Sequence record: LC727695.1
Length of the DNA: 64,000 bases
Strand: one strand, 5' to 3'
This document shows, piece by piece, positions 4,017 to 42,870 of the stretch (the stretch's first letter is position 1; each line of letters begins with the position of its first letter). Under the pieces are notes generated by a model that made no database searches, had not been told where the DNA came from, and saw only the letters and a list, made by a program, of their open reading frames with translations. A program made the position numbers and the translations under genes.

Positions 4017-5648
4017 TTATTTTGCACGGAACATTAATTGAGCGTTGTCAATTATTTCACGCACTTCTTCACGACGTTCAACTAGTCCAGTTGGACCCAC
4101 TTTGGTATACATATTAAGCCTACCTCGACCATCCGGGTTGTTCTTGGGTTGGTTTTTATATTGACCTACCTCAGCAATAGATGCGTGAATAATCCTAGAT
4201 GAGTCATTGATTAGAGACTTATTATGCGCCTTAGCTGTTTTAGCGCGATCCTGTGTAACTAGGATAGATGTCCCTTTAATCAGCATACTAGAGTTTGGAT
4301 TACTCATTGTATCGAGTTCACCATGATCCACTGTTAATCGTTTAATAGCTGTCTGTAGTTTAAAGGAACGCTTTAAACCTTCATTTAGCTCTTGTACAGT
4401 CCATTCACGATCACGCCTAGACTGGAACATATAGCCAAACATACTTACAGCATAGTTAAACTCTGACATCAAGTAATGCAGTACTGTTAACCTTTTACCA
4501 TACATACTAGTTTCATCAATATCAGTAGCATAAAGATGGTGAGCCAAACTAGTCATGATCTCGTAAAGAAGTTCCCAAATAGTACTTACATTGACACCAA
4601 CTGTTTTAAGTTCTTCAATAGTCATTTCGTCTAGTGAATTACAGAAACTGTGTAGGTGTGAATCAATGTTTTCCTCTACCTTACCTTGGTGTTCAAAATC
4701 ACCAAACACCATGTGACCTAGGATAACACGCCATAAGTTGGTACTATCTACATATTCAGGTCGAGTGAATCGCATTGGAAATGCATCGACTACATACCAG
4801 AAACCAGCGATAAGTCGTGTGGCAAAAATAGATTCTTGGTGACGAGGCATAACAAGAACCATTTCGCCGGTTGGGTGTTTGCCTTTTAATGTTGCACTGG
4901 AATAAATATTCCACTTTTCACGTGGATATTCTTCTTCAGGAAAATCAGACAGTAGTCCACACTTAACATCTACATTAGCCCATTGTTTGAAAGTTTGAGT
5001 TACTCCAAACTGACAGAAGAAATAATGAGCTAAACATGACTCAATATGTGGTCTATTATCCAGATCTCGTTTAGTACGCTTAGCCATTTCATTGTGAATC
5101 TGTGACCAGATTACATACATGATTTTACGCTGACCATTGCACATGTAATGGTGGTCAGTTTGTTTAAAGGTCAGCTTAGTACGACGAAACGGGATGAAAA
5201 TACTATCATTAAGTACAGAGAACCCAACATCAGTTAATACTGGTGAACCGATATATTTCGCACCATTGATAGTTACCATATTGCCTCTCTTAAAAGCTGG
5301 TAACAGCATTGGGCGAGGATAAAGCATTTCCCCTTTATAACTAAACATTAGGTCAATCATGTACATATCAGTTGGAGCAATATTGGCAATACGCTTAGCA
5401 TTATATTCCCGAGTAATCTCTTCAAAATGCTTAAGCGGTGTACATGCACGATTGCCTTCATATTTGAAGCCATCGGGAAATAGAACTGAACTGATATCAA
5501 ATAAAGAATCAATATAACGCCTGGTCATATTAACACCAGTATTTGGATCACGAGTCATGGTGTGTTCGACTGTGATACCATTTGCTAGTGTTGGATTCAT
5601 GCAAGGCGTATTTTCACGAATCTTTTCAATTAGAAATGGATCCGGCAT
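4017..5648 (-). CDS. Non-virion RNA polymerase beta-like subunit (gp123-like)
   Basis: 543 aa. C-terminal H.S..G.....(P)..NP.GRGRLN segment resembles the RNAP beta fork region. Size and position match the phiKZ nvRNAP subunit as I recall it. Confidence 0.85.
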   Translation of the reverse strand: MPDPFLIEKIRENTPCMNPTLANGITVEHTMTRDPNTGVNMTRRYIDSLFDISSVLFPDGFKYEGNRACTPLKHFEEITREYNAKRIANIAPTDMYMIDLMFSYKGEMLYPRPMLLPAFKRGNMVTINGAKYIGSPVLTDVGFSVLNDSIFIPFRRTKLTFKQTDHHYMCNGQRKIMYVIWSQIHNEMAKRTKRDLDNRPHIESCLAHYFFCQFGVTQTFKQWANVDVKCGLLSDFPEEEYPREKWNIYSSATLKGKHPTGEMVLVMPRHQESIFATRLIAGFWYVVDAFPMRFTRPEYVDSTNLWRVILGHMVFGDFEHQGKVEENIDSHLHSFCNSLDEMTIEELKTVGVNVSTIWELLYEIMTSLAHHLYATDIDETSMYGKRLTVLHYLMSEFNYAVSMFGYMFQSRRDREWTVQELNEGLKRSFKLQTAIKRLTVDHGELDTMSNPNSSMLIKGTSILVTQDRAKTAKAHNKSLINDSSRIIHASIAEVGQYKNQPKNNPDGRGRLNMYTKVGPTGLVERREEVREIIDNAQLMFRAK

Positions 5649-5657
5649 TATAAACTC

Positions 5658-6740
5658 CTAAACTTTTGGCAAAATTAAATCCATCAGTGAACCTACAATT
5701 TTAATGGATGATACTAGATCAGAGGCAATGGAGTTTAGATCACCCCATTTTAGACCATGAATCAATACAACATCTTTTGGTTTGAATTCTTTATCAAACG
5801 TACCAGCTGCTTTTTCCTGGGCTTCCCTTTCCTTAATATCAGCCGCTGTTAAGAGTGCAGTCTTAAGACGTTCAATAACTTTCTTATCTTTAATTCCAAC
5901 CATTGCAGCAGCTTCTTCATGTGTTCTAAAGAAACCATTTTCATGGAACTGTTCAGGAGGTATTACATATCTCTTTTCGCCATTATGACTAATACATCCA
6001 TGCTTACCACGGATATTAACAATAAGACCAGGATCTAATGATGGATTGTAGATTGACTCAATGGCCATAATTCTGCCAGCCATTACATAAAACAATTTAT
6101 CTGGTTTATTGATGTCAGTATTATACGTTAAAGAATATGTTTCATTCCATACTTGATTAGAAAGTGCTTCTTCTTCTGGACTAAGTCCGCTGTAACCAGG
6201 AGGACTAATATTTCTATTTGGATAAAATTCAAAATACTGACTATACTCAGTTTTAAATACTTGGATACCTAAACTCTGAATCCAACCACCATGATACTGA
6301 TCTACTAGTTTTGATAAGTCAATTGAATACCAAATAGTAATCTCAGATAGCTGGTTATTAAACTGATCGAATGTCTGTCGACTAAATGACTGAATATATT
6401 CTAACATTTCCTCAGGTGTAAAACCTGGAATAGATTTAGCCATAACTTCATAGTTAAAACTATCATCACCACTCCATCGGTAAATGACCTTAACTACTAG
6501 TCTATTAGACATTACATACTTACGGGATGTCCCAATATTGATAGCGTGACCAGATGAATCGACTACAGTAATACGATGAAATGATTCATTCCGATACTCA
6601 ACAAAACGTGAGACAGGGAGATTCCAATTAGCGTATGGATCACCCTTAGTGTATGCAGTTCCCGATTTCTTATCATACGGGTGATCGATAGTAGGCTTAA
6701 CTGATACTTGAGTAAGCCCCGCAATTTTTAGTGTTACCAT
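5658..6740 (-). CDS. Hypothetical protein (gp122-like)
   Basis: 360 aa ORF in an operon with the nvRNAP subunit gene. Confidence 0.75.
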   Translation of the reverse strand: MVTLKIAGLTQVSVKPTIDHPYDKKSGTAYTKGDPYANWNLPVSRFVEYRNESFHRITVVDSSGHAINIGTSRKYVMSNRLVVKVIYRWSGDDSFNYEVMAKSIPGFTPEEMLEYIQSFSRQTFDQFNNQLSEITIWYSIDLSKLVDQYHGGWIQSLGIQVFKTEYSQYFEFYPNRNISPPGYSGLSPEEEALSNQVWNETYSLTYNTDINKPDKLFYVMAGRIMAIESIYNPSLDPGLIVNIRGKHGCISHNGEKRYVIPPEQFHENGFFRTHEEAAAMVGIKDKKVIERLKTALLTAADIKEREAQEKAAGTFDKEFKPKDVVLIHGLKWGDLNSIASDLVSSIKIVGSLMDLILPKV

Positions 6741-7149
6741 TGAAATCTACCTTAATCACAACGGCCTCCAAATCTACAATGTTGGGGAGCCTCTTTTTAG
6801 TTTGATGTACGGACCTTCCCTTAAAGGATTCACTCTTTTCCTTATTACTTGATTTCTGCCATTTATGCGGGTCACTCGAACAATATAACTTTTCGGTGGC
6901 CCGCTTAAACTGTTTTTCTTGAAGGATCTCCTCAATGTTTTTCTTGGCATAATCAGTAATAAAGTCCTCTAGCCCTTTGGGCATAAAGGCATCCTGAACA
7001 GGATGGAATTCTTCAAAGAAAGTATTAATGTATTTATCATCATCTACGGTAGACATCTTATTATCTACCATGGTATTTTTTTCTATAAGAGATACCCTTA
7101 GGGCATCTTGCCATCTTTCGATGACTTCTGGAAATAATTGAACGTTCAT
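6697..7149 (-). CDS. Hypothetical protein (gp121-like)
   Basis: 150 aa ORF directly downstream of an early-promoter motif. It overlaps the next gene by 44 nt. Confidence 0.7.
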   Translation of the reverse strand: MNVQLFPEVIERWQDALRVSLIEKNTMVDNKMSTVDDDKYINTFFEEFHPVQDAFMPKGLEDFITDYAKKNIEEILQEKQFKRATEKLYCSSDPHKWQKSSNKEKSESFKGRSVHQTKKRLPNIVDLEAVVIKVDFNGNTKNCGAYSSIS

Positions 7150-7192
7150 TTGGATTAACCTATTTTTAAATTAGAAGATCATGATCATTACT

Positions 7193-7209
7193 GTAATATA
7201 GATCTTAAA
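7193..7209 (-). promoter_or_regulatory. phiKZ-type early (virion RNAP) promoter
   Basis: Minus strand TTTAAgatcTATATTAC matches the TTTAA-N4-TATATTAC pattern seen at other sites in this window and the reported phiKZ early consensus. Confidence 0.8.
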
Positions 7210-7235
7210 CTTTTTTTAATGTAATACAACATAAA

Positions 7236-7255
7236 GCCCTCCCCGAAGGGAGGGC
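7236..7255 (-). terminator. Capsid operon terminator
   Basis: GCCCTCCC-TTCG-GGGAGGGC on the minus strand. Confidence 0.9.
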
Positions 7256-7264
7256 CTATGTCTG

Positions 7265-7345
7265 TTACTCTTCTAACTTCCGGGCATTGCCGTCTTCCAA
7301 ATAACGGATAGTCCCATTTTCTAGATAACGGTAACCCTTTCCAGC
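7265..7345 (-). other. In-frame 26-codon extension after the capsid TGA (candidate readthrough domain AGKGYRYLENGTIRYLEDGNARKLEE)
   Basis: Translated by hand from 7345 to the TAA at 7267-7265. It contains an internal RxLE(N/D)G repeat and has no start codon of its own. Confidence 0.6.
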
Positions 7346-9589
7346 TCACGGCTTAAGATCAGCAAGCTTACCGTTGAACTGAGTTTCGCCCATGACTTTC
7401 TGGAAGCCAGTGATCTTGAACTCTAGCGCGAACGGAATGTTGTTGACGTGTAGGTTGAACGGAATGGCCGCGATTTCGCGAGTAACCTGGTGACCACCAC
7501 GAGTGATCGGTAGGTCAGCGATAACAGTAGATACGTAGAAGAACTGGCCCCAGGAGAGGATGTCGTTTTCTTGTTGTACTGCGCGGGTCGGAATTACAAC
7601 TAGCTTACCATCAAATAGCTGGTTGTTGGTGGAAACGATATCGTACTTGAGATAAGCACCTAGAGTACGGTCGTCACCTTTAGTCATTAGATAGTTAGCA
7701 ATCTCTTTGTCGGAGCAGAAGAGATACATCGGAGTTTCATCCTGGTTACCGGAGATAACACGGAAGGCAGCTTCAATGTTGGAATCACGGTGAGCCGGGA
7801 ATAGCTCAGCTTTAACACAGTTTAGGATCGCAGCGCAAACGTCGTCCCAACGATCTTTAGACTTGATGGTGTCGATGACTTTCTCAAGATCTAGTTCTTT
7901 GTAACGATAGGTCGGACGCATTACAGCGGATAGTGCACCTTCGATGATACCAAACTTCGGACGGTTGTAACCATTGTGTACAACTTCACGTAGTTGAGCA
8001 AGGTAGTTAAGCATGCGCTTAACAGCGTTGTTGCTGTTACGGATGTTGGTGTTAACAGTTAGAGCTTTAACAACCTCACCCGGACCTTCATCGGTCATGG
8101 TGTCCATCGGTAGAGTTACAGGAGCGTGCATCGGGATCGGATGACGGAACTGTAGTGCACGGGTCTGTAGTAGGTGACCACGCTGACGACGGTTAGTGTT
8201 GGTGAAGCGAGTATCTAGTTCGAAACCGATAACAGCTAGGTCAGTTAGCTGATCTAGAATAGCTTTAACAGCCGGGTCAGCATTATCCATTACCTGGCCA
8301 TCTTCGTTTAGAACTTTATCGACGTAAGTGTCGGTAGCACCAAACTTAGAATCGCCTTTGGATAGGCTGATAGTACCACCAAAACCAACGCTTAGACGTA
8401 GGCTTAGTTTAGCAGTCTTAAGGTCGTTAATAACGCCATCAGCTGAACCGTCGATGAAAGTGGTATCGCCACTAACAACAAGGTCATCGCTATCGAAACG
8501 GATAACTGCGTTCCGGGTATCACCAACTAGATCGGGCTGGAACACAGCGCGAGGTAGACGGTCAACCTTGAACTTAACAACTTTACCGCCGAGTAGAACG
8601 AATAGGTTCTTTAGACGACCAGCCGGATCAATGGTGTCAGAAACTTCAAGCATGCCACGCTGAATGAGTAGGTTAGCATTGGAGTTACCCATTAGATCAA
8701 GACGTACGTTCGCTTTTAGCGGAGCAGTAGTGATAGTTAGGTTCTGCTCGTTCTTGATGGTGTACGGAGGAACAAGAGCCGGGTCTACGAAGAAGTCAGC
8801 ATTGGAACCAGCCGGATCTAGGGCAGGAATTAGTGCAATGCTTTCGTCGTCGAGGATGGAAGGATCACGATAGGCTTCTACCATGTTCACTTCTTCGTTA
8901 TCCATCTTAACGCCGGATACTTCGTGGTAAACGTCTTTCATTACAGCGATGTAAGGAAGAACCTGAACAACACCACCTTCAATCGGGTTGATAACGGTGG
9001 TCGGATAGATACGCTCAGCGAATTCATCCTGACGGCTAGCAGCTAGGTTATAACCAATAGTTACAACACGGAAATCACGCTGTGACTTCTCGTTATAGTT
9101 CTCTAGGCCAACACCATTTTCGAATACTTGAATGCCACCAGCAGGGCCATTGAACTGATGCTGTACAACCTTAACATGATCTTCATTAGAAGCTTTAGCT
9201 TTGGTAATACCACGTAGTGCACGGATATATTTAGTTTCATCAGCACAGGCGATAGCAGCCATGGTAGCAGCAGTGATTTGGTTCTCACGGACACGTTCTT
9301 CACGAGCACGTACTTGAGGATCACTGGAACTTACTCGTTCGAAACCATAGTCGTTAACGAGCATTTGCATTTTGTTATAAATTGCAGCGGCATCTTGAAT
9401 GTCGGTAGCTTGCACGGTACCGAAGTTTTCATGTGAAATGCTGCTAATAAGGGAACGACCTTGACTAACAACGCTGTCATTTAGACCAATTTCACTTTCT
9501 AGGCGGCCAATGAAATCTTCCATTGAGAAGACTTCGTAATTCTTTTCGCCTTTGTGTTTAAACAGTTCTCTTAGGGCATGTACGCTCAT
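7346..9589 (-). CDS. Major capsid protein precursor (gp120-like)
   Basis: 747 aa with high-expression codon bias. The propeptide ends at a G-L-E motif (NGVGLE|NYNEK), matching the S/A/G-X-E specificity of the phiKZ prohead protease. Confidence 0.92.
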   Translation of the reverse strand: MSVHALRELFKHKGEKNYEVFSMEDFIGRLESEIGLNDSVVSQGRSLISSISHENFGTVQATDIQDAAAIYNKMQMLVNDYGFERVSSSDPQVRAREERVRENQITAATMAAIACADETKYIRALRGITKAKASNEDHVKVVQHQFNGPAGGIQVFENGVGLENYNEKSQRDFRVVTIGYNLAASRQDEFAERIYPTTVINPIEGGVVQVLPYIAVMKDVYHEVSGVKMDNEEVNMVEAYRDPSILDDESIALIPALDPAGSNADFFVDPALVPPYTIKNEQNLTITTAPLKANVRLDLMGNSNANLLIQRGMLEVSDTIDPAGRLKNLFVLLGGKVVKFKVDRLPRAVFQPDLVGDTRNAVIRFDSDDLVVSGDTTFIDGSADGVINDLKTAKLSLRLSVGFGGTISLSKGDSKFGATDTYVDKVLNEDGQVMDNADPAVKAILDQLTDLAVIGFELDTRFTNTNRRQRGHLLQTRALQFRHPIPMHAPVTLPMDTMTDEGPGEVVKALTVNTNIRNSNNAVKRMLNYLAQLREVVHNGYNRPKFGIIEGALSAVMRPTYRYKELDLEKVIDTIKSKDRWDDVCAAILNCVKAELFPAHRDSNIEAAFRVISGNQDETPMYLFCSDKEIANYLMTKGDDRTLGAYLKYDIVSTNNQLFDGKLVVIPTRAVQQENDILSWGQFFYVSTVIADLPITRGGHQVTREIAAIPFNLHVNNIPFALEFKITGFQKVMGETQFNGKLADLKP

Positions 9590-34881: not shown

Positions 34882-36204
34882 TTACCTTACCTGGGAGGGA
34901 TTATTTACTTGTTCTTGCGTAGGTCTTTGAATTGGACGCTGGTAAGCTTTTAATTCTAACTCGGTCACGAATACTAGTCGACCCATTACTCTGACTAAAC
35001 CAGCAAGAGCATTACTAAAATCTGTTACAACGCGACTTACATTATTGATCATTAATGTAATTGAATTAATGATATTTGAGATAGCAGGGATGCCATCAGG
35101 TGCATCAGGATCTTGAACTTTTGCTTGACGATTTCGCATATTAGATTGTTGTGCCCGAATCCTACCAGCTTGTTGACGATTAGTCTCGGCTAACTGCATT
35201 AACCTACCAAATTCAAAATCTAGTTTAGTTGCATAATCTTTTCTAGCATCTATACGTTTAGCCATTTCGCTTAATAATACTAACCGTCTTCCAATTGAAC
35301 TCGTATCATTAACCTTAAAGGTATTGTTACCTTCAGGTGCATCCTTCATAGTAGGAATAGTATAAAACTTAAAGGCAAAATCACGGACAGTATTTACTAA
35401 AAAATCCCAATCCCTGATCTCTTCAGTCTGTGTTTCAGTTGGCCCTGCGCCAAATAAAGTCTTATTACCTTGAACTGGCATACTACGATAAACTGTAGAA
35501 CTTACTCTAAATCTATCATCTTTCTTAATAGGTACTGCACCCTTCATCCAGTTCTTAACATTAAACTTACTAAAGTCTTGTGCAGCTCTATCAGTCCATT
35601 TTTCATCAAATGATAATTTCCTAAGGATATCCGCTACAGATTGGATATACAAGAGTAGGGATTTATCATAGAAAGCTATCAAGTTGTTAACTTGCATGAG
35701 TATCGGATCAACTGTAGTCGGTTCGAATTTACCATCAATACTAAATCGTTTAGTATTTTTAAATTTTAATTCTTGCTTAAATGGCTCATGCTTAATATTT
35801 TCAGCTCTTTCTAAAAGCATGTTTATTCGTTCAAGAGTACGTTGATTACCTTGTGTAATAACACGTGCATACTCTTTTAACTCATCTCGATGCTTTGCTT
35901 GGGATTTTTTCATTTCATCCCAGGTATTTCGTGCTGTCTTAGATAGGTCTTCTAATGACACATTCTCAGTTTTTAGAATGTGTTCACTAACAACATCTTG
36001 GTTATCTGCATATTTTTGAAATAAGCCATCGGTATAGGTTTTAACTAAAATGTCTTTTTCAGTGCATTCTAATCTACTTTGAATATCTTCAATTGATGGC
36101 AATAATTCTTTTAGATATCCATCGCATGTAGCGATCATATCGACGGGGCTGTCCCCGTCGATTGATTCAAGTAAGACCGAATGACTAAGTGAATTATTAG
36201 TCAT
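34882..36204 (-). CDS. Head protein (gp92-like)
   Basis: 440 aa, VSLE|DLS motif. Confidence 0.7.
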   Translation of the reverse strand: MTNNSLSHSVLLESIDGDSPVDMIATCDGYLKELLPSIEDIQSRLECTEKDILVKTYTDGLFQKYADNQDVVSEHILKTENVSLEDLSKTARNTWDEMKKSQAKHRDELKEYARVITQGNQRTLERINMLLERAENIKHEPFKQELKFKNTKRFSIDGKFEPTTVDPILMQVNNLIAFYDKSLLLYIQSVADILRKLSFDEKWTDRAAQDFSKFNVKNWMKGAVPIKKDDRFRVSSTVYRSMPVQGNKTLFGAGPTETQTEEIRDWDFLVNTVRDFAFKFYTIPTMKDAPEGNNTFKVNDTSSIGRRLVLLSEMAKRIDARKDYATKLDFEFGRLMQLAETNRQQAGRIRAQQSNMRNRQAKVQDPDAPDGIPAISNIINSITLMINNVSRVVTDFSNALAGLVRVMGRLVFVTELELKAYQRPIQRPTQEQVNNPSQVR

Positions 36205-36213
36205 AGATAGTCC

Positions 36214-36759
36214 TCAGTCCTTATCTATTACTTCTACAGATCCAAATAGTAGATGTAGGGTATACATTAGATCATTCATACCGTTTTTGTGTTTAACCCA
36301 ATTCTGGATCATTGAAACAGTATCTAGATCTAATTTTAACTCATTAAAGAGAGTAGCAATTTCAGCGCGCGGTTCAATGAGTTGTGCACCAGCATCTGGT
36401 TCAGTAGCTAGTAACATTGGCCATTGGGTAATTGAAATACGTCGATGACCCGTAGCAATGTATCGAACAGTATCTAATAGGAATTGATAATTATAACTAT
36501 CAATATTACTATTATTGTCCTGTAGAATAAACCAATTATAGTTTCCGCTAAAAAGACGAATAGCACAAGCTAGAACTTTCTTATGGAATTCCCAATATGC
36601 AGTTTGTGCAGGAAAGTTGGTAAAGATAAGATATAGTTCTTCAACTTGAGGATCACCGGGACGAGCAGTGAACCGTGAAATGGCCTGTTGTTGACCACCT
36701 GAGTAATTACGACCAAATGGGCGTACAGCATTAGTTGCTGGCATATCAATGCCCTCCAT
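36214..36759 (-). CDS. Head protein (gp91-like)
   Basis: 181 aa with overlapping start/stop. The true start may be the internal MPATN codon (GGAGG RBS). Confidence 0.65.
   Translation of the reverse strand: MEGIDMPATNAVRPFGRNYSGGQQQAISRFTARPGDPQVEELYLIFTNFPAQTAYWEFHKKVLACAIRLFSGNYNWFILQDNNSNIDSYNYQFLLDTVRYIATGHRRISITQWPMLLATEPDAGAQLIEPRAEIATLFNELKLDLDTVSMIQNWVKHKNGMNDLMYTLHLLFGSVEVIDKD

Positions 36760-38898: not shown

Positions 38899-42870
<3,972 letters not shown>

Follow-up and report, generated by a model that had tools for sequence, protein, structure and literature searches.

The Ig-like protein Hoc of phage T4 decorates the capsid at capsomer centres and is a separate protein that binds the finished lattice. 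The poleroviruses and enamoviruses carry a readthrough extension on the coat protein itself (CP-RT), as described in PMC9553062. In phages, long capsid isoforms made by frameshifting are given for T7 (10B), T3, Lactobacillus phage A2 and Listeria phages A118, A500 and PSA in part of a recoding review (PMC5009743); the same part of that review holds frameshift cases only, with no readthrough case for the capsid gene of a tailed phage. Among nucleus-forming jumbo phages, phiKZ serves as the model; a high-resolution structure of its capsid and a catalogue of its virion proteins are available. Here we describe a phiKZ-type capsid locus whose sequence and relatives make it likely that selected, low-level UGA readthrough yields a minor isoform of gp120, the major capsid protein, that bears a gp143-like tail. 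A literature search found no earlier description of this capsid extension, and no reported peptide, band, ribosome footprint or cryo-EM density for it.

Organization of the capsid gene and its 3' end

The window, by which we mean the whole 64,000-nucleotide stretch of record LC727695.1 that was analysed, comes from a phiKZ-type genome (identity is 100% with phage Brmt and 99.8% with phiKZ across the 601 nt compared). The product of the capsid ORF is identical over 747 residues to chain a of PDB 8Y6V, which is gp120, and relatives of this product carry a precomputed Pfam PhiKZ_MCP match. The initial annotation held that this ORF ends in Pro-TGA, that 26 in-frame sense codons follow up to a TAA, and that this extension nearly fills the space before the terminator. 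Inspection of the sequence confirms each of these points (Table 1), with the terminator hairpin (7257-7234) beginning 7 nt after the TAA of the extension. The proposed eight-residue period is also present: arginine recurs at extension codons 6, 14 and 22, and the tail unit consists of three eight-residue copies with Arg at position 1, Glu at position 4 and Gly at position 6. As had been stated, the extension lacks a start codon of its own, its sole in-frame ATG, GTG or TTG being a TTG at codon 16.

Table 1 Features at the 3' end of the major capsid gene (window coordinates)
Feature	Position	Strand	Remarks
Major capsid protein gene, phiKZ gp120	7349..9589	minus	747 sense codons; from the ORF list
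TGA stop of the capsid gene, proposed leaky (readthrough) codon	7346..7348	minus	preceded by a Pro codon
In-frame extension (proposed readthrough tail)	7268..7345	minus	26 sense codons; peptide AGKGYRYLENGTIRYLEDGNARKLEE
Tail repeat 1, RYLENGTI	7307..7330	minus	extension codons 6-13; Arg, Glu and Gly invariant (22/22)
Tail repeat 2, RYLEDGNA	7283..7306	minus	extension codons 14-21; Arg 21/22, Glu 21/22, Gly 22/22
Tail repeat 3, truncated, RKLEE	7268..7282	minus	extension codons 22-26
Second stop TAA, end of the extension	7265..7267	minus	
Intrinsic terminator hairpin of the capsid transcript	7234..7257	minus	10 bp, G+C-rich, T-rich tail
Conserved TTTATG directly 3' of the hairpin	7230..7235	minus	T, A, T and G columns invariant in the flank alignment

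TAA is, as claimed, the commonest stop in the window (36 of the 54 long ORFs, with 10 TGA and 8 TAG). Within a single genome a 26-codon open stretch is not beyond chance; open stretches of at least 26 codons follow the stop in about 9 of the 54 ORFs, some of them being the next gene in the same frame. What makes the extension significant is the comparison with relatives, together with its match to a profile of gp143 tails. The hairpin conserved downstream places the extension on the capsid mRNA. The TTTATG that follows, which may be a late-promoter element, is part of the neighbourhood and not of a recoding signal.

Conservation of the TGA and the extension among relatives

A TGA followed by an in-frame extension of 24 to 30 codons is kept in 25 distinct relatives, which span at least seven named genera (Phikzvirus, Pawinskivirus, Miltoncavirus, Phabiovirus, Serwervirus, Tepukevirus, and Noxifervirus) and include uncultured contigs. 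The first stop is TGA in every one of the 25 relatives with a short extension, whereas the second stop varies (TAA in 12, TGA in 5, and TAG in 5 of 22 aligned sequences). Relatives without the extension have TAA in 19 cases and TGA in one (L093), and the association between TGA and the presence of the extension across 39 loci has a Fisher p of 2.7e-11, with kinship ignored. Three losses fall within clades that bear the extension, and each is a deletion of it. Its repeated loss in several lineages indicates that the extension is dispensable there. The base after the stop, which also opens a codon, is A in 16, G in 6, C in 1, and T in none of the 23 extension carriers counted, versus G in 7, T in 5, C in 4, and A in none of the 16 relatives counted without an extension.

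Frameshifts, in-frame stops or a TAA at the capsid stop had been named in the initial annotation as evidence against readthrough. This part of the comparison came out in favour of readthrough with one exception: the pattern is absent where the short peptide is kept, but L036 has a TAA in front of an intact, longer extension. Since the TAA relatives other than L036 lost the peptide by deletion, the pattern is not found where the peptide exists.

Selection on the encoded peptide

In 22 aligned extensions, six amino-acid columns are invariant or conserved in 21 of 22, and each of these columns is encoded by two to five synonymous codons. The arginine codons switch between CGN and AGR, and all four glycine codons are used at conserved columns. 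The mean pairwise nucleotide difference at the six columns is 0.10, 0.02, and 0.52 for codon positions 1, 2, and 3, respectively, and in 17 of 27 extension codons variation is highest at the third position (p = 0.0015). The ratio pN/pS is 0.61 in frame versus 0.86 and 1.07 in the shifted frames, with pS at 0.66, so that synonymous sites are near saturation, and length differences between the tail repeats preserve the frame. This pattern indicates that the extension is under purifying selection at the amino-acid level. An alignment of the 3' flanks of relatives thus has the form that had been expected of readthrough, namely TGA in 25 of 25 with an in-frame peptide whose conserved residues are changed almost only synonymously, and the original reading of UGA readthrough gains support from the invariant TGA, the open frame and the synonymous-biased change in the extension.

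Two relatives, L036 and L091, have a 95-codon extension composed of a Big_2 Ig-like domain and the capsid-type repeat tail. Here too pN/pS is lower in frame (0.47) than out of frame (1.12 and 1.32), and differences at codon positions 1, 2, and 3 number 33, 29, and 62. Big_2 was matched in L031 (E 4e-9), L036 (E 5e-7) and L091 (E 1e-3, a match below the curated cut-off). A Pfam search with the 26-residue extension of the window gave no match, hence no Ig-like domain.

A repeat tail shared with gp143

Both the capsid tail and the extreme C-terminus of phiKZ gp143, a DUF7941 virion protein, consist of the same triple repeat of eight residues. A profile built from 45 tails of the gp143 family matches the extension with E = 4.4e-9, the sole significant match among 2251 six-frame pieces of the window (next best, 0.08), and PHROGs gave a weak match (E 0.08) of the short extension to phrog_2935, the gp143 family. 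The arginine of the third repeat is invariant in a joint alignment of 21 extensions and 14 gp143 tails. The DUF7941 globular module is absent from the capsid protein, which has an HK97 fold (PDB 8Y6V; PhiKZ_MCP in Pfam). The capsid protein and DUF7941 proteins share the tail alone, and the capsid protein is therefore not a member of the DUF7941 family. The repeat is also absent from the other two DUF7941 proteins of phiKZ, encoded in the window at 3-584 and 596-1036, and from the gp127 linker, likewise encoded in the window.

In a single-chain prediction of the gp143 monomer, the tail has a pLDDT of 74-85 and periodic beta-bridges. A PDB sequence search with the 26-residue peptide found no solved structure, and a profile of 35 sequences (extensions and gp143 tails) matched only a designed helical protein (E 0.07). 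Extensions are no more similar to the gp143 tail of their own genome than to those of other genomes (permutation p = 0.86), a result that lends no support to a co-evolving partner shared by both tails.

Proposed readthrough and its alternatives

In the mechanism that we propose, the capsid mRNA reaches as far as the terminator and includes the TGA with the 26 codons behind it. At the UGA most ribosomes would terminate and give the 747-residue gp120, and a minority would decode the UGA with a near-cognate host tRNA, presumably inserting tryptophan, and finish at the TAA. The product would be a longer capsid isoform with 27 residues added; a few subunits of each head would display this tail at the centres of capsomers, where it most likely serves as a short peptide for docking. 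Readthrough as the route, its frequency, the inserted residue, the outward orientation of the tail, and its binding target are what we infer. No stimulatory RNA element was found (see below), and so the readthrough rate may equal basal UGA leakiness.

The position of the tail would follow from the capsid structure, where residues 728-747, the C-terminal arm, sit at the capsomer centre and, in pentons, contact the outer protein gp244 (PMC11297242). The deposited capsid chain (PDB 8Y6V) stops at residue 747, and extra density beyond the C-terminus goes unmentioned in both structural papers on the phiKZ capsid; a flexible, sub-stoichiometric tail would be averaged out of the map. The isoform would also have gone unnoticed in searches and models, since these rest on the protein as annotated, with 747 residues.

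Were UGA decoded efficiently in infected cells, by a phage ribosome factor or an unseen suppressor, most or all subunits would bear the tail. PhiKZ-type phages do make ribosome-binding proteins, according to PMC11849849, and a disordered extension would be invisible in symmetrised maps. However, the 10 long ORFs of the window that end in TGA look like ordinary stops, and no suppressor is present among the seven annotated tRNA genes of phiKZ (Thr, two Asn, Asp, Met, Pro, and Leu; ARAGORN was run on 94 kb out of the 280-kb genome and the remainder was covered by the tag numbering t01-t07 of the record). Among the 120 capsid-protein clusters of the clade, the stop is never replaced by a sense codon and the repeat is never fused to the capsid protein without a stop, which argues that a full-stoichiometry fusion is selected against. 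Six C-terminal arms moreover form a tight bundle with a 9 Å pore. We regard decoding at this level as improbable.

It is quite improbable that the 26 codons constitute a separate small gene, translated by re-initiation after termination at the TGA into a free peptide of 2-3 kDa. Such coupling is common in phages, and the lineage of L031 and L088 has an ATG as the third codon behind the stop, where a gene caller places a separate 201-aa Big_2 protein. Nevertheless, none of the 22 extensions has an in-frame ATG, GTG or TTG before the first invariant arginine, 12 of the 22 have none at all, and the first seven codons vary freely with no conserved start. There is likewise no start codon before the Big_2 domain in the 95-codon extensions of L036 and L091; the first candidate in L091 is at codon 31, inside the Ig-like domain. 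These observations uphold for these relatives the statement that the extension lacks its own start ahead of the conserved part.

The stretch might instead be untranslated, as a conserved RNA or DNA element such as a spacer before the terminator or a regulatory structure, with an incidental open frame. The DNA of the flank is indeed conserved, since blastn alignments run past the capsid stop at about 72% identity, and the terminator, TTTATG and TCTATATTAC are conserved motifs just downstream of the extension. Against this, variation follows a three-base period and falls mainly on synonymous sites, and the other two frames carry stops at varying places. RNAalifold found no covarying helix within the extension, in contrast to the terminator hairpin, which covaries strongly (9-11 compensatory changes at three of six predicted pairs in 22 relatives). 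Rfam gave no match at threshold and, at E <= 10, only sub-threshold matches around the terminator. Further, lineages without the peptide have deleted the stretch yet retain the terminator. We consider an untranslated element highly improbable.

Equally little credence can be given to a decaying relic, in which an ancestral capsid C-terminus was cut off by a nonsense mutation and the remainder has yet to erode. L036, with its TAA before an intact extension, could be an intermediate, and the extension has been lost repeatedly. However, this explanation is already contradicted by the substitution pattern, in which synonymous sites are near saturation yet six residues are invariant or nearly so and the frame is open in 25 lineages. 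In addition, the TGA is fixed where TAA and TAG would be expected, as at the second stop. Bacterial selenocysteine genes likewise have coding sequence behind a UGA, but insertion of selenocysteine under the direction of a downstream SECIS hairpin has a negligible probability here, because no conserved hairpin follows the UGA, Rfam gave no SECIS-type match at E <= 10, and the bases following the capsid stop differ among clades.

Other candidates at this locus were rejected. A 53-codon GTG ORF at 7188-7349, in another frame, has a stop inside it in phiKZ itself, and in HPP-Temi and Viktualia the small genes that overlap the extension, annotated as 'hypothetical protein', use other frames. In-frame 'stop hopping' was rejected because the codons flanking the stop never match.

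Possible function and implications

Under low-level readthrough, the tail is probably a docking peptide, and because it is the repeat that ends the virion protein gp143, there is a concrete docking candidate. DUF7941 proteins have been proposed to assemble head-to-tail, with the C-terminal linker docking on the N-terminal domain of the next protomer (bioRxiv 10.64898/2026.04.21.720040), and another paper describes gp143 as a regulator, in the cytoplasm, of the holin gp142 (PMC12894885). We tentatively suggest, as a doubtful but specific possibility, that the readthrough tail lets a few capsid subunits imitate the gp143 C-terminus and plug into whatever binds that tail. The binder may be the N-terminal domain of a DUF7941 protein; the head would then anchor gp143 or filaments of DUF7941 proteins. 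Alternatively, it may be the partner of gp143 in holin tuning, in which case heads, as they accumulate, would titrate a lysis regulator and couple the timing of lysis to capsid production.

If correct, this would be a case of a tailed dsDNA phage whose major capsid gene undergoes stop-codon readthrough, extending over at least seven named genera. It would add a component to the capsid surface and link the head to gp143, for which two competing roles have been published (holin regulator and member of the DUF7941 filament family). For annotation of this clade, it would provide a rule by which a TGA together with the repeat denotes an extended isoform, and it tells groups working on structure or proteomics which peptides, and which place on the capsomer, to inspect. 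For phiKZ the extension peptides are YLENGTIR and YLEDGNAR, and neither coincides with a tryptic peptide of gp143.

Comparison with known systems

As in Qbeta A1 and the CP-RT of poleroviruses and enamoviruses, a putatively leaky stop ends the coat gene, the in-frame extension lacks its own start, and the particle would be expected to contain a minor, extended isoform of the coat protein. In contrast to RNA-virus coat readthrough, the genome is that of a 280-kb dsDNA jumbo phage, the tail has no more than 26 codons (95 in two relatives), the search for a stimulatory RNA structure was negative, and the extended product in phiKZ is predicted from sequence. The locus resembles T7 10B and similar isoforms in that two products of a major capsid gene would differ by a C-terminal addition, which in those isoforms is sometimes Ig-like according to PMC5009743; the relatives L036, L091, and L031 have Big_2 at the same position. 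However, the phiKZ extension lies in frame 0 behind a stop, and no slippery site is needed. The triple eight-residue repeat at the extreme C-terminus is common to the tail and the gp143 family (phrog_2935), the latter differing in its DUF7941 globular module, which the capsid protein lacks. Finally, as with T4 Hoc, the site concerned is the capsomer centre, where the phiKZ capsid C-terminal arm lies and where relatives append Big_2, but unlike Hoc, the phiKZ module would be a covalent part of a minority of capsid subunits.

The 3' end of the capsid gene

The 747-codon ORF at the centre of this analysis encodes gp120, the major capsid protein of a phiKZ-type phage, and its product is identical to chain a of PDB 8Y6V. 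Across 601 nt around the stop, blastn finds phage Brmt 100% and phiKZ 99.8% identical. The initial annotation described an eight-residue period and the lack of a start in the frame beyond the capsid TGA, and both were confirmed, the sole possible in-frame start being a TTG at codon 16. Its remark that most genes in the window stop with TAA also holds (36 TAA, 10 TGA, and 8 TAG among 54 long ORFs). In a single genome, a 26-codon open stretch past a stop is ordinary, similar stretches following about 9 of these 54 ORFs.

Features at the 3' end of the capsid gene (window coordinates) and the gp143 gene of phiKZ
Feature	Position	Strand	Remarks
Capsid ORF, 747 codons	7349-9589	minus	ORF listing
Capsid gene stop TGA	7348-7346	minus	sequence reading
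Extension, 26 sense codons, capsid frame	7345-7268	minus	sequence reading
Second stop TAA	7267-7265	minus	sequence reading
10-bp hairpin and T-rich tail (terminator)	7257-7234	minus	3' of TAA
gp143 gene, 177 residues	phiKZ NC_004629.1 145693-146226 (= L047:17694-18227)		annotated virion structural protein

Directly 3' of the terminator stem lies TTTATG (7230-7235, minus), the T, A, T, and G of which are invariant in 22 relatives, and about 30 nt further is TCTATATTAC (7193-7202, minus), which recurs in many of them. By their resemblance to phiKZ late and early promoter motifs, they may be promoter elements; the region containing them (7193-7235, minus) has its equivalent place in relatives' loci L002-L043. 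The downstream gene gp121 (6697-7146, minus) has a sub-threshold Pfam match to a surface-antigen glycosaminoglycan-binding domain (E 7e-4, below the curated cut-off). Elsewhere in the window, three pairs of neighbouring genes share a frame, with just one stop and several codons between the partners: TGA between 36214-36759 (-) and 34882-36204 (-), TAG between 5658-6740 (-) and 4017-5648 (-), and TAA between 38902-39951 (+) and 39955-42870 (+).

Conservation of the extension and its stop codon

The capsid 3' flanks of PS119XW, Phabio, 201phi2-1, PhiPA3, Psa21, Noxifer, and Viktualia were read together with 32 loci from an IMG/VR scan and 18 from a metagenome scan. The blastn alignment continues beyond the stop into other genera at about 72% identity. 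All seven named phages have TGA at the capsid stop and an open frame 0 for 26-30 codons past it, while the other two frames are closed at varying positions. Pooling all sources, TGA precedes every one of 25 distinct short extensions, whereas the second stop varies (TAA, TGA, or TAG). Relatives without an extension end in TAA (19) or TGA (one, L093). Among distant chimalliviruses, the capsid genes of LucasX, DT01, and RAY have low-complexity tails and then TAA, and that of RP31 has TGA followed by 15 codons unrelated to the extension. Past the TGA of L093, about 800 nt (L093:3819-4615) are devoid of called genes and of any recognisable extension, with a single long ORF (255 codons) of low-complexity appearance.

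Across the sequences compared, stop codon identity tracks the presence of the extension (Fisher test, 2.7e-11, over 39 non-redundant loci and ignoring shared ancestry). Since that test ignores ancestry, a better argument comes from three losses nested within extension-bearing clades, as judged by flank inspection and a neighbour-joining tree built from the C-terminal part of the capsid protein. L039 among Noxifer-like phages, L080/L081 adjoining L037, and L071 among Psa21-like phages each lack the stretch through deletion and have TAA as the capsid stop. Immediately 3' of the stop, A occurs at 16 of 23 loci with the extension and at 0 of 16 without it, and T at 0 of 23 and 5 of 16, respectively. 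No repeat fused without a stop was found among 120 capsid-protein clusters of the clade, which fits selection for a minority isoform.

The substitution pattern shows that the extension evolves like coding sequence read in the frame of the capsid gene. Aligning 22 distinct extensions gives three columns of Arg, two of Glu, and two of Gly that are invariant or conserved in 21 of 22; the first Arg column uses five codons of both CGN and AGR kinds, and all four Gly codons occur in each of the two invariant Gly columns. In conserved columns, codon positions 1, 2, and 3 have mean pairwise nucleotide differences of 0.10, 0.02, and 0.52, and 17 of 27 codons vary most at the third position (p = 0.0015). 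In frame, pooled pN/pS equals 0.61, as it does over the final 15 codons of the capsid gene, compared with 0.86 and 1.07 when the frame is shifted; because synonymous changes approach saturation, the constraint is stronger than this value suggests. Length differences between repeats are whole codons.

Longer extensions with an Ig-like domain

The capsid C-terminal parts of L036 and L091 are about 65% identical to that of the window and have acidic Gly-rich linkers preceding the stop. Past it, 95 in-frame codons encode a Big_2 Ig-like domain and then the same triple repeat. Aligned gap-free, the two extensions share 55% of their amino acids, with 33/29/62 differences by codon position and a pN/pS of 0.47 in the capsid frame against 1.12 and 1.32 in the other two. 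In L091 no start is possible before codon 31, which lies within the Big_2 domain. L091 has TGA, and its sister sequence L036 has TAA before an intact 95-codon extension (L036:2143-2433, on a 220-kb contig). In the L031/L088 lineage, TGA is followed by 203 in-frame codons opening with Big_2; because an ATG is codon 3, this lineage could just as well carry a separate gene under translational coupling.

The capsid C-terminus of many relatives (L030, L032-L034, L040, L082, L083, L090, L094, and L095) is a linker-like tail of 15-30 Gly/Asp/Thr/Pro-rich residues, then TAA without any addition; a linker of similar kind stands before TGA and the Ig-like domain in L031 and L091.

Probable route of translation

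Independent initiation of the short extension is unlikely, because in none of the 22 sequences is the conserved part preceded by an in-frame ATG, GTG, or TTG, and 12 lack these codons altogether. No frameshift is needed, since the extension shares the capsid frame; the case is neither one of frameshifting nor one of selenocysteine insertion. An in-frame hop over the stop is argued against, as the codons flanking it never match. With RNAalifold, no helix in the extension covaries, and the terminator is recovered with 9-11 compensatory changes in three of six predicted pairs, so the method can detect structure in this region. No Rfam family reaches threshold. The seven annotated tRNA genes of phiKZ include no suppressor, and the window holds no tRNA genes. 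UGA is the leakiest bacterial stop, and decoding by a near-cognate host tRNA would be the sole remaining route, probably giving a minor extended gp120 isoform by low-level readthrough.

A shared tail on gp143

In every phiKZ-type genome, the 26 residues have a second tblastn match at the extreme C-terminus of gp143, which contains a DUF7941 module. The triple repeat ends all 45 gp143-family members from metagenomes, and a 24-position profile of these tails has the capsid extension as its sole significant match in the window (E = 4.4e-9; next 0.08; 2251 six-frame pieces). Relatives of gp143 occur in 69 phage records, Pseudomonas phages throughout, and the capsid 3' flank likewise matches 69 Pseudomonas-phage records by blastn, an agreement in count only. 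Where the capsid extension is lost, the gp143 tail is retained (L064 and L039, on one contig). The AlphaFold2 model of gp143 has a mean pLDDT of 89, and 74-85 in the tail, where beta-bridges are predicted every eight residues.

DUF7941 proteins, including phiKZ gp126, gp127, and gp143, have been proposed in the Goslar structure preprint to form head-to-tail chains attached to the peripheral baseplate, each protomer's C-terminal linker docking on its neighbour's N-terminal domain (10.64898/2026.04.21.720040). The capsid protein does not belong to this family. In the phiKZ lysis cassette, gp143 has been reported as a non-essential cytoplasmic regulator whose first globular domain binds the N-terminal domain of holin gp142 (PMC12894885). 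These readings, holin-specific lysis regulator versus filament-forming family, differ, and neither paper discusses the C-terminal repeat. Some 6 kb away from the capsid gene, 3-584 (+; Pfam E 7e-21) and 596-1036 (+; 9e-10) encode two DUF7941 proteins, which by position correspond to gp127 (its C-terminal part) and gp126; the triple repeat is absent from both.

Possible role on the capsid

In the solved capsid, the hexamer centre is occupied by a helix bundle with a 9 Å pore, built from the C-terminal arms (residues 728-747) of six subunits, and the arms in pentons extend to the outer protein gp244 (PMC11297242). A chimallivirus capsid protein with C-terminal GFP still localises in a capsid-like manner. 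With about 1615 subunits per head, readthrough of 0.1-1% would yield 2-16 tails. Our best guess is that the tail is a docking peptide, displayed outwards by a small number of subunits in each head, which would share the binding partner of the gp143 tail, whichever this is. Same-genome co-variation between the extension and the gp143 tail is absent, which does not help the shared-partner step.

Comparison with known systems

Literature searches covering 8.4 million articles and preprints turned up no account of readthrough in the capsid gene of phiKZ-like phages, and two phiKZ structural papers and the Goslar structure preprint do not mention it; the readthrough proposed here is well supported by comparative evidence. 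The arrangement, with its predicted extended product, would work like the coat readthrough extensions of RNA phages and plant viruses. The long capsid isoforms of T7, T3, A2, A118, and PSA (PMC5009743) reach the same end by another mechanism, frameshifting.
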